Shown here one piece after another: positions 22,026-25,000 of a DNA stretch of 64,000 nucleotides. How positions within the stretch are numbered: the first letter of the stretch is position 1; every line of letters starts with the position of its first letter. The position numbers and the translations under genes are program-made. The notes under the pieces are model-generated. The model worked only from the letters and a program-made list of their open reading frames with translations. It ran no database searches and was not told where the DNA came from. Source of the stretch: Macrostomum lignano (lineage: Eukaryota); the NCBI GenBank assembly GCA_002269645.1, contig NIVC01000169.1:650097-714096 (forward strand). Direction: 5' to 3'.

Positions 22026-25000
22026 TCACCGCCCGCCGCCAGCAGCGTCGCCAGACGGCCGATTGTGGAAGATCTGACGCAGTAGGCGCTCGATGCTGGT
22101 CAGGCTCTCGGTGGTGGCGGCCTCCATGCTCTGCAGCCTGGACTCCATCTCGGCCATTCGAATGTCAGCTGATTGATCGTCAACGAGGGCGCGATCTTGG
22201 CGCCTGGCGCTTCTGTGGCGCCGTCTCTTTGGCTTCGTTTGCTTTTGTGCCTCTGGCGCGTCTGGCGTCAGGTTTTCCTTGTCCAGCGGCTTGGCTGGCC
22301 CGGGCTGAACTGGCTGCATGACTGGGATCTCCTGCGGTCGGGTGCGGGTTGAGGGTGCTTGGTACAGACAATAAACCCATATAAACACCAGGAAATATTC
22401 ATAGCGCAAACAGTCCTCATACAACTCTCATTTACCTCCAAAAACACGCATAAACCCTCATAAACCCACATACATGTAAACCCTCATAAACCCACATACA
22501 TGTAAACCCTAATAAACCCACATACATGTAAACCCTCATAAACTCCTATAAACCCACATACATTTAAACCCTCATAAACTCACATAAACACACATAAACC
22601 CTAATAAACTCACATAAACACCCATAAACCCTAATAAACTCACATAAACACCTATAAACCCTCATAAAACAACATAAACCCAACCCCCCTTCCAGTGCAG
22701 ACTGCCACTCTCCTCAAATCACAGTGAACTCACCGGAACAACCTTCATTTTTGCCGGTGCATCCCACTCCATCGTTTCCGGTTTAACTTCCGGTTTAACT
22801 TCCGGCTTTGCTGCAGATTTTCCGTCTGGTTTCTCGTCCGGCTTGCTGCTGCACGCCTCATCACGCCGGTGCCCGTGTCCGTGGTGCAGCTGGTCCTCGA
22901 AGCGTTCGTCGATCCGGTCGCAGATCTTGTACAGATCTTCCAGTCTGCGCAATTTGGGAAAAAATCAAATTTTCAGATGTAGAAACTATAACAAAGTATT
23001 CTACATGTTTAAAATCGGTTAGCAAAGCAAATAAGTAAAGCAAGACGGCAAGTTAATTTACTACTGTTATTAGATGTATACTACTTTCAGTAGCAGAAGT
23101 AGAAAAAGCTTTTTGTTTTAAATCTAATGTTTAGAGTTGGTTATGTCTCGTAAGTCACCGCACAGCTGGTGAGTTGTTTGTTTCCTTGGCAACCAACCCA
23201 TCGCAGATTCCTGTCATTCGATTGCTGATTTCTAATCGAACTTCTTCGTCGCGTCTTCGATGCACCCGGATGAGGCAGTGGGCGGCGAAATTGCGCAGCT
23301 CATCCTGACTCAGAGCTTTGTCCTCCTGATTGGCTGCGGTGCCGGGTGGGGGGCTCAGGTGTGCTGTTTCTGTCTGTCAGCCTGTCCGCCTGTCTGTCTG
23401 TCTGTCTGTCTGTGTGTCTGTCTGTCTGTCTGTCTGTCTGTCTGTCTGTCTGTCTGTCTGTCTGTCTGTCTGTCTGTCTGTCTGTCTGTCTGTCTGTCTG
23501 TCTGTCTGTCTGTCTGTCTGTCTGTCTGTCTGTCTGTCTGTCTGTCTGTCTGTCTGTCTGTCTGTCTGTCTGTCTGTCTGTCTGTCTGTCTGTCTGTCTG
23601 TCACCGGTGATAAAAAACGCATAGCAGGGATGAAACAAAGGCAAAAAGGAAAGTGTTTAACACCACCAGAATATCTAAAAAAGAGAGCATTACAACACAT
23701 ATAGCAGGTAACTGTGACGGATACTAGCAAAGAATTAAAAAGAAACATTGTAATTGCAAAAGTCAACAATTTCTAGGAAAGGAACTAGAGAAGAGGATAG
23801 AAAAGAAAAGTTCGCATGAAGGCAGGTCACGATCGCCTGTCAGACCTGTTCACCACAGCTGTCACTCGGACGTCGAGAGTCTGGGACTCCTTGGCCTTCA
23901 GTTGAGCCATCAAGCGCCGCGTCATCTCCATTTCAAAGGTCGCGAGTTCGTTCTTGATGCCAATCAAAATTGGCACTGAGATGTTTTTAACAGGCAATGT
24001 AGGAAAATGTTGTTTTTATTTATGGGAACTTATGTGGCATGGCTGTTGAAATTGTTTAGATCTCAGGTTTAAATTGTGTAGATCTCAGGTTTAAATTGTC
24101 TAGATCTCAGGTTTAAATTGTCTAGATCTCAGGTTTAAGTTGTGTAGATCTCAAGTTTAAATTGTGTAGATCTCAGGTTTAAATTGTGTAGATCTCAGGT
24201 TTAAATTGCGTAGATCTCAGGTTTAAATTGTGTAGATCTCAGGTTTAAATTGTCTAGATCTCAGGTTTAAATTGTCTAGATCTCAGGTTTAAATTGTGTA
24301 GATCTCAGGTTTAAATTGTCTAGATCTCAGGTTTAAATTGTGTAGATCTCAGGTTTAAATTGTGTAGATCTCAGGTTTAAATTGTGTAGATCTCAGGTTT
24401 AAATTGCGTAGATCTCAGGTTTAAATTGTGTAGATCTCAGGTTTAAATTGTGTAGATCTCAGGTTTAAATTGTGTAGATCTCAGGTTTAAATTGTGTAGA
24501 TCTCAGGTTTAAATTGTGTAGATCTCAGGTTTAAATTGTCTAGATCTCAGGTTTAAATTGTGTAGATCTCAGGTTTAAATTGTGTAGATCTCAGGTTTAA
24601 ATTGTGTAGATCTGAGATTTAAATTGTGTAAATCCATTGGATTAAAAATCACATACAACCAAGGCACGACCATTAGAATAATGTAAAATTTAATAACCAT
24701 AATCAAAATCAAGATTTGTCATGACAGGTTGGAAAGAAAGGCAGATTTCAAGATCTGACTCACCTTCATCTGGTTTCTTTTTGCAGGAAATCTTGTTAAA
24801 CAGCATCCTGCCAAAGATGAAGAAGTCCTCGAAGACCACGAACGGCAGGGCCAACACGGGTTTGTTGTGGTACTCTTGCACTAGAAAGTACATGTTGTAC
24901 TTCCAGATTTCAATAGCATTTCTCTCAATCTCTTCAAATATGTTGCTGCAGGATGTGATGTTTTAAACGGAGCATGCTTGTTAAACGGATTGTAGAAAAT

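Follow-up and report, generated by a model that had tools for sequence, protein, structure and literature searches.

A TRPM channel gene of Macrostomum lignano with a putative pair of alternative rib-helix exons

A TRPM channel gene on the minus strand

A stretch of 64,000 nucleotides (nt) of the Macrostomum lignano genome (assembly GCA_002269645.1, contig NIVC01000169.1, positions 650,097 to 714,096 of the forward strand), hereafter the window, carries a gene for a TRPM channel in which two neighbouring exons, called here A (14A) and B (14B), encode two versions of the same cytoplasmic element, the rib helix and the turn that follows it. All positions are those of the whole window, and the gene and both exons lie on its minus strand. 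The gene occupies 22026-36421 and, in a model assembled from stop-free segments and splice-site reading, consists of 16 coding exons; the full-length frames are open over 1287 amino acids (aa) with exon A (isoform A) and 1299 aa with exon B (isoform B). In the modelled protein, Pfam recognises an N-terminal LSDAT_euk (SLOG) domain (6e-60, 203 bits), a TRPM2 domain (2e-44, 153 bits) and an Ion_trans domain (4e-14, 52.8 bits), which corresponds to the architecture of the TRPM family: SLOG and TRPM2-like domains, and a six-transmembrane ion-transport domain followed by a TRP box. The S6-TRP region can be aligned to all solved TRPMs (best E=1e-20), although the TRP box reads WKYNMY instead of the usual WKFQRY, the Arg being replaced. 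No Pfam match to a NUDIX (NUDT9-homology) domain was obtained in the modelled protein, which therefore lacks the mark of the TRPM2-type chanzymes and of TRPM_PZQ.

The same gene is represented in UniProt by A0A1I8H0Q3 (P0002, M. lignano), which is identical to our model in all properly aligned exons. That entry drops several exons and ends in junk right after the TRP exon, so that both A and B are missing from it, and the exon model presented here corrects this truncation. Additionally, its 88-aa N-terminal extension maps at 100% identity to 37127-36864 (-), an upstream coding exon, and for this reason the true protein start may lie upstream of the modelled ATG at 36421.

Two adjacent exons with the same phases

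The exon that precedes the pair, exon 13 (24764-24945), encodes the end of S6, the TRP box and the post-TRP segment, and its donor (GAAG/GTGAGT) leaves one nucleotide, that is, phase 1. Downstream, exon 15 (22734-22944), or the LEDLYK exon, has an acceptor, TTGCGCAG, that takes phase 2; the helix that comes after the rib helix continues in this exon and is followed by a low-complexity linker. Between them lie exon A (23846-23975, 130 nt), with the canonical rib helix and turn, and exon B (23198-23363, 166 nt), with a divergent rib helix and turn preceded by a PPPG linker, separated by an intron of 482 nt. Both complete the codon begun by the G carried over from 24764, stay open and give two nucleotides to ACT/GGAAGAT at 22944, and all splice sites of the pair are of the GT-AG type. 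Re-reading and translation of the window reproduced exactly the peptides, coordinates and phases (1 to 2) that an initial annotation, made from the letters alone, had given for the two exons.

That annotation had also pointed out that both lengths are 3n+1, so that double use or double skipping shifts the frame. This holds in the assembled gene: inclusion of both exons through the proposed sites leads to a stop at aa 1137, and skipping of both to a stop at aa 1139. Several of the properties expected of a mutually exclusive pair are found here, namely adjacent homologous exons with the same entry and exit phases and with both isoforms open, and we consider that this is a real alternative exon pair. 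That A and B are also strictly exclusive, as the frame would suggest, has in our view about an even chance. Regarding the means of enforcing exclusivity, the frame provides the stops mentioned above, but an in-frame route to both exons exists, and the 482-nt intron is not too short for both to be spliced.

The in-frame route is not the one that had been foreseen. The initial annotation had allowed for an unnoticed frame-preserving acceptor in the (CAGA)n run in front of exon B, and no such acceptor is there: acceptors within the run do not lead to a product with A and B's peptide, as a TGA at 23379-23377 interrupts B's frame, and the other frames entered from the run read (QTDR)n and depend on a poor donor (23310). 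Instead, double inclusion in frame could occur through an acceptor located 10 nt inside exon B (CCTGAG/CCC), which would produce a shorter form of B (23198-23353, 156 nt, 3n) that keeps the frame only if it follows A, giving a tandem of A and B. At its other end, exon B could be extended by 39 nt (23159-23197) to a stronger donor, GCG/GTGACT (6.1 bits), with the addition of 13 residues, but this would break the 31-residue spacing discussed below.

Both exons encode the rib helix

In rabbit TRPM3, the rib helix comprises residues 1163-1192 (PMC12819145) and, by that numbering, it corresponds to positions -41 to -12 in the M. lignano gene, the count being made from the end of the exon. Each of the two exons covers the linker that comes from the post-TRP segment, all of the rib helix and the turn, and the following helix runs into exon 15. 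Counting from the 3′ end of the exon, Leu at -34, Phe or Trp at -31 and Arg at -8 stand in a gapless register in A, B, rabbit TRPM3, human TRPM1, the Nematostella TRPM2-like channel and zebrafish TRPM2; zebrafish TRPM5 keeps only the Leu and the Trp. Among 47 TRPMs of other species, Phe or Trp is found at -31 in 44, Glu at -30 in 46, Leu at -34 in 35, and Arg or Lys at -8 in 36. Position -27 is most often Cys (16/47), F-x-x-x-C being the commonest state among invertebrate TRPMs. Exon A carries the whole signature of the element, L..[FW]E and, 23 positions past the aromatic residue, a basic one, about 49 residues past the TRP box. In exon B the Leu, Phe, Cys and Arg of positions -34, -31, -27 and -8 are all kept, and Ala stands in place of the near-invariant Glu -30. 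The Cys at -27 is, in turn, replaced by Met in A and in A′, the counterpart of A in a second M. lignano gene that is described below.

That both exons are homologous to each other and to the TRPM segment following the TRP box had been proposed previously and was borne out by shuffle tests in which the register was fixed by the exon 3′ end and not optimised. Compared with five solved TRPMs (rabbit TRPM3, human TRPM1, Nematostella TRPM2-like, zebrafish TRPM2 and zebrafish TRPM5), exon A reached z=5.7 and exon B z=4.0 (p=2.5e-4). The comparison of B with A, over a gapless register of 37 residues with 6 identities, scored 15, while the shuffled sequences averaged -27 (p=1.2e-3).

The two versions are not equally close to the rest of the family. 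Relatives from nemerteans, molluscs and vertebrates score 40-57 against the core of A and about 0-10 against that of B, and exon A combines a good acceptor with a lophotrochozoan/TRPM2-like sequence in which the [FW]-E motif is kept. A is the canonical version and probably the default, and B is the divergent, faster-evolving one. The alignment of both isoforms to TRPM structures, suggested as a check in the initial annotation, showed that each of them carries the alignment through the exon for some solved TRPMs: isoform A does so for nvTRPM2 (77.3 vs 66.3 bits) and also for drTRPM2, TRPM5 and TRPM8, and isoform B for TRPM1 (62.8 vs 60.0 bits) and TRPM3 (61.6 vs 57.9 bits). The idea that A would be TRPM2-like and B TRPM1/3-like stands for A but was abandoned for B, in which Glu -30 is gone and whose F-x-x-x-C, present in 16 of the 47 TRPMs, is simply the commonest invertebrate state; the scores of B against sequences of the TRPM1/3 type (33-34) are no higher than the general level.

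It was also proposed that the pair encodes the post-TRP rib helix and the start of the coiled coil. The part on the rib helix is correct, as the exons contain all of it plus the turn, but the candidate for the tetramerising coiled coil is found in the last exon. Exon 16 (22026-22331) encodes a conserved C-terminal helix and the stop codon; the reading frame closes at 22029, with the protein ending about 30 residues past the helix. This helix is amphipathic and strongly conserved in the paralogous gene, and it is the more likely candidate for the tetramerising coiled coil. It was not recognised by any Pfam model, and no Pfam TRPM_tetra match was obtained.

A functional difference between the versions may be expected from their charges. 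The element couples the cytoplasmic MHR1/2 domain to the gate. In TRPM3, each rib helix touches the MHR1/2 domain of an adjacent subunit, and activation is shifted when charges at this contact are altered; in particular, mutation of E1180/R1183/E1184/D1187 alters both the MHR1/2 contact and activation (PMC12819145). At the equivalent positions (-24/-21/-20/-17), exon A has R-A-Q-A and exon B has R-R-R-E, and over the whole charged segment B reads RVHRRRDEE where A has RLMAQLKAK.

Coding character of exon B

Openness and phase alone say little in favour of an exon, since 34 open AG..GT cassettes of 3n+1 length can be drawn in the same intron. Codon usage is more specific. Under a codon model for which the remaining exons of the gene served as training set, the log-likelihood ratio of exon B is 0.43 bits/codon in its frame, compared with 0.13 and 0.11 in the other two; exon A reaches 0.60, the real exons range from 0.28 to 0.89, and all the intronic open frames of at least 43 codons (14/14) stay at or below 0.09.

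Other approaches were less informative for segments of this size. The A and B peptides alone gave no matches in the PDB, for which they are too short. Word-indexed protein searches with the C-terminal part of each isoform returned one S6-TRP fragment (P0001), and as they also missed the identical UniProt entry, the absence of further matches is uninformative. AlphaFold2, run without an alignment on the TRP-to-rib segment of each isoform, gave predicted local distance difference test (pLDDT) values of 49 and 54, with a weak hint of helix-break-helix in both. Finally, the residues conserved between B and its paralogous counterpart, B′, do not gather significantly on one helical face (p=0.11-0.16).

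A second TRPM gene with both exon types

An exhaustive search of representative proteins, together with a cluster look-up, revealed a second M. lignano TRPM gene, which is known here from five protein models (P0003, P0004, P0005, P0154 and P0155; UniProt entries A0A1I8F3N8, named "TRPM1", A0A1I8F1M8 and A0A1I8FGH3). Exon by exon, the identity between the two genes amounts to 68-69% for S1-S6, 59% for the TRP exon and 57% for A/A′, whereas for B/B′ it is 30-38% depending on the paralog model (14/37 identities in the core, by our own count); in the first 25 aa of exon 15 the identity is 64%. When the paralog was compared by tblastn with the six frames of the window, exons A (E=1.4e-9) and B (E=1e-3; 23325-23194) were matched separately and in collinear order, and no further copy of either was found.

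The models of the paralog contain the B-type exon in two different contexts. In P0003, which reads ...CCRKGKE-GESGRLSQREEADLRNFTTHCLSLVNTRQELETKGRIEQRIQSIYSG-LDELYK..., a B-type exon is joined directly between the TRP exon and the next one, without A′, and the spacing is canonical, with the B′ core 51 aa after the TRP box, compared with a family median of 49. In P0004, by contrast, the TRP exon is followed by an A-type exon (RLLASFRHELMVFESEMARRLMAMLKAKQSQTLEMRVKTVTNR), then by 24 residues and then by the same B-type exon. Both a product with B′ only and one with A′ and B′ are, therefore, seen among the models. The order of the elements, TRP - A-type - B-type - L[ED][DE]LYK, is shared by the two genes, as are the derived features of each exon type; they differ in the interval between the A-type and B-type exons, of about 20-25 codons in the paralog and 482 nt here, and in that, ahead of the phase-1 acceptor of B′, the reading frame is uninterrupted (in three models).

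Two further features concern the age and the constancy of the pair. There are 31 residues from the Phe or other aromatic residue to the donor in B, B′, A and A′, as well as in TRPMs from cnidarians to mammals. Additionally, B and B′ have in common derived states that are not found in A or A′ (no Glu at -30, Cys at -27 and a terminal Gly), which indicates that the split between A and B is older than the gene duplication. At such a divergence, DNA free of constraint would have lost both its open frame and its alignability. The B type was therefore present ahead of the gene duplication and was retained by selection in both descendants, and we regard this as the decisive evidence for exon B. The old exon duplication that had been suggested initially is, consequently, supported by a paralog (68% in S1-S6, 59% in the TRP exon) that keeps both types in the same order, and it appears that both have been maintained by selection in the two genes. 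Considering all these data, both exons are probably functional coding exons in the gene of the window.

Splice sites and the case against alternative use

Exon A has an acceptor, CATCTCAG, of 4.0 bits, in the 96th percentile of intronic AGs, and a weak donor (CAG/GTCTGA, 4.1 bits). The situation of exon B is less favourable, and its splice sites are the main argument against its use as an alternative to A. Its acceptor, GAAACAG at 23363, scores -10.8 bits, which places it in the 14th percentile of intronic AGs and makes it the worst site in the gene; the pyrimidine fraction at this phase-1 acceptor is 0.28, and the donor, TGG/GTTGGT, is weak (2.5 bits). The acceptor at 23353, with which B would become a cassette of 3n length behind A, is better (0.6 bits). 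Furthermore, a (CAGA)58 microsatellite (sense strand, 23369-23602, -) directly abuts the acceptor of exon B and sits between it and the sole strong pyrimidine tract (approximately 23660-23605). After this tract there is an acceptor of 3.2 bits at 23597, and an exon that started from it would reach the TGA at 23379-23377 or read (QTDR)n out of B's frame.

Other observations also count against the pair. Exon B has the lowest G+C content at third codon positions (GC3) in the gene (0.59) and is less conserved than any other exon, and both features could reflect relaxed constraint. A search for complementary selector/docking RNA pairing in the three introns returned four inverted repeats, none of them above chance; the best, of 17 nt and 82% complementary, joins 24741-24757, just past the donor of the TRP exon, with 22932-22948, at the acceptor of exon 15, and about two such repeats would be expected by chance by our own estimate. 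Moreover, the public model of the gene, A0A1I8H0Q3, uses neither exon correctly, and the models of the paralog are automatic predictions from an error-prone assembly, some of which read through introns and one of which, P0004, shows A′ and B′ in tandem.

Rival readings of exon B

The simplest way to dispose of exon B would be to regard it as unrelated to TRPM, its frame being open by chance in an intron segment that is GC-rich and poor in stops. The many phase-compatible open cassettes of the intron and the lack of a PDB match for the B peptide alone would agree with this. However, the anchored similarity (z=4.0), the coding-like codon usage and, especially, the match of B′ in the right place of the paralog, with the same length and register, leave this explanation with a negligible probability, and we consider it effectively refuted. 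It is harder to dismiss the idea that exon B is a relic, that is, an exon that was functional ancestrally, and perhaps still is in the paralog, but was disabled recently in this gene, when (CAGA)n cut it off from its pyrimidine tract and only A remained spliced in. The very poor acceptor and weak donor, the position of the microsatellite exactly between the only strong pyrimidine tract and the exon, and the lowest GC3 and fastest divergence of the gene speak for such a history, and a frame of 55 codons stays open by chance with a probability of about 0.1 (our rough estimate from the frequency of stop codons). Nevertheless, the frame is intact, its codon usage is frame-specific and exon-like, and every family-typical residue kept by B′ is also present in B. 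Given the deep split of the paralogs, only a very recent loss would leave B so well preserved, and tandem arrays adjoin working splice sites elsewhere in the gene, for instance at exon 6. We regard a relic as a serious rival, although an unlikely one.

In the remaining alternative, A would be constitutive and B an optional cassette, included after A through 23353 (156 nt, 3n), so that two rib-helix-like segments would stand in tandem. The difference between the two acceptors (0.6 vs -10.8 bits) speaks for it, as do the open product with A and B, in which B's frame is kept, the A′, 24 aa and B′ of P0004 and the frame that is open upstream of the phase-1 acceptor of B′ in three paralog models. 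But GAG acceptors are disfavoured, and G is found at -3 in none of the other 15 acceptors of the gene (0/15). In a tandem, moreover, the helix that continues from the last part of A into LEDLYK would be broken, and there would be two copies of an element that is single in every solved TRPM, and P0003 uses B′ alone with canonical spacing. Besides, P0004 and P0005 visibly read through repeat-filled introns, and the tandem of P0004 may be a prediction artefact; because of this read-through, we give it less weight. The cassette is likewise a serious rival, but we consider it quite improbable. Our preferred reading, in which A and B are old tandem duplicates of one exon, both functional and used alternatively, is the best explanation of the whole, with about an even chance of being right in all its parts.

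Repeats and other features of the window

The microsatellite in front of exon B is one of many. There are large tandem arrays in nearly every intron of the TRPM gene (22000-37200), each intron having its own: (CAGA)58, 22 nt x27, 20 nt x57, 12 nt x57, 32 nt x29, (CTGT)161 (sense), 28 nt x11, 33 nt x32 and 28 nt x71. The array of 22-nt units (24045-24634, 26.8 copies) takes up the greater part of the intron that separates the TRP exon from exon A, and the AGATCT palindrome that it contains is also part of the 17-nt inverted pair mentioned above. The array of 71 units of 28 nt, in intron 1 (34138-36124), has a unit that in the sense strand reads ...GATACTGG/GTGAGTCACAGAT... and holds the end of exon 1 and its donor; as a consequence, a perfect donor is repeated in tandem about 70 times at the start of intron 1. 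Several of the arrays translate as long stop-free repeats, and gene predictors have evidently been misled by them, as in the read-through of P0004 and P0005; the models of the paralog are chimeric or intron-reading. Annotators of the M. lignano genome should be warned that repeat-filled introns, together with homologous alternative exons, mislead automatic prediction.

Two other details of the gene model deserve mention. At 32075-32083, the intron after exon 4 appears to be of the GC-AG type, with a classical AAG/GCAAGT donor, and no GT donor that would keep the frame fits there. For exon 6 (-), two acceptors located 42 nt apart, at 30726 and 30768, are both in frame; the form that starts at 30768 comes directly after the (CTGT)161 array and would have 14 additional aa. 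We took 30726, in agreement with P0002 and the paralog.

Outside the gene, a non-LTR (long terminal repeat) retrotransposon was found at approximately 14992-17113 (-), with an RVT_1 frame (1.8e-16) preceded by a frame with a weak match to an apurinic/apyrimidinic (AP) endonuclease (22.2 bits, the Pfam cut-off being 24.5). Two near-identical copies of a segment of at least about 1.2 kb, at approximately 19900-21100 and 12300-13350 (-), contain long low-complexity open frames and are followed by hexapeptide-like tandem repeats (PTAHPT/SYSP...) at 19270-19780 and 11290-12280, with no Pfam match. Upstream of the TRPM gene, 55479-57469 and 47860-49252 (-) contain open frames of 480, 229 and about 405 aa that have no Pfam match either and may be further genes or repeat-derived frames.

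Proposed model and comparison with known systems

In the model that we propose, a single ancestral TRPM exon, encoding the rib helix and the turn, would have been duplicated in tandem to give 14A and 14B. Either of them would join the TRP-box exon to the LEDLYK exon, producing two isoforms that differ only in an element of about 45-55 residues, and the frame rule (both exons being 3n+1) would remove the products with both exons or with neither, which would result in exclusivity. As the rib helix of TRPM3 contacts the neighbouring MHR1/2 and charge changes there shift activation, the two versions could provide two set-points of gating or coupling, or possibly two partner preferences, from one gene. 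In its most complete form, the proposal is that a TRPM gene exchanges the whole of its rib helix through mutually exclusive splicing, and that the pair predates a deep gene duplication in Macrostomum and was kept in both daughters, the version without Glu -30 having its basic and then acidic cluster on the part of the helix with which TRPM3 touches the MHR1/2 domain of the adjacent subunit; to this full statement we give somewhat less than even credence, and we advance it tentatively.

If it were true, one gene would provide channels with two couplings of the cytoplasmic ring to the gate, possibly including mixed tetramers, and a gating interface that has until now been probed by point mutations alone would be open to study as a natural experiment. 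It would also mean that invertebrates diversify TRPM gating by exon choice and not by gene duplication alone. The rib helix has only recently been shown by cryo-electron microscopy to be a transducer from the cytoplasmic domain to the pore (PMC12819145), and a natural pair in two paralogs, if real, would be a ready comparison.

In full-text searches of the literature, alternative rib-helix exons were not reported for any TRPM, and nothing on this gene was found; PMC9910428 discusses a different M. lignano TRPM. Among the TRPMs examined here, two versions of the rib helix are found in no other apart from the paralog. In its position, exon A is like the solved rib helices of rabbit TRPM3, of the Nematostella TRPM2-like channel (6co7) and of zebrafish TRPM2 (6drj), with its core 48 aa past the TRP box, compared with the family median of 49, and with an equal distance of 31 residues between the aromatic residue and the beginning of the next helix. 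In net charge, by contrast, A and B are approximately neutral (+1), whereas TRPM3 has -6 and nvTRPM2 -4. The gene also resembles the flatworm TRPM_PZQ/TRPM2 type in its SLOG and TRPM2-like domains, and its best solved match over S6-TRP-rib is the Nematostella TRPM2-like channel, but it differs from the TRPM2-type chanzymes in the NUDT9H/NUDIX domain, which has no match here.

Mutually exclusive exons that arose by exon duplication are common in ion-channel genes, for instance those of voltage-gated Na+ and Ca2+ channels. Another example is found within the TRPM family, at a different position: XP_069140029.1 and XP_069140028.1 (P0008 and P0152), NCBI isoforms X1 and X2 of a TRPM8-like invertebrate protein, both of 1444 aa, differ only at approximately 810-856 (pre-S1/S1) and are an annotated mutually exclusive pair. 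The M. lignano exons share with the known ion-channel pairs their adjacency, phase and homology, the replacement of one structural element and a frame that would penalise double inclusion or double skipping. They differ from them in their unequal lengths (130 vs 166 nt) and in being only about 16% identical, and the use of B is a prediction. They also differ in the element that would be swapped, which is here the cytoplasmic rib helix and not a transmembrane or pre-S1 segment. The mechanism is, therefore, a known one, and the pair described here is a new instance of it that is not surprising in principle.

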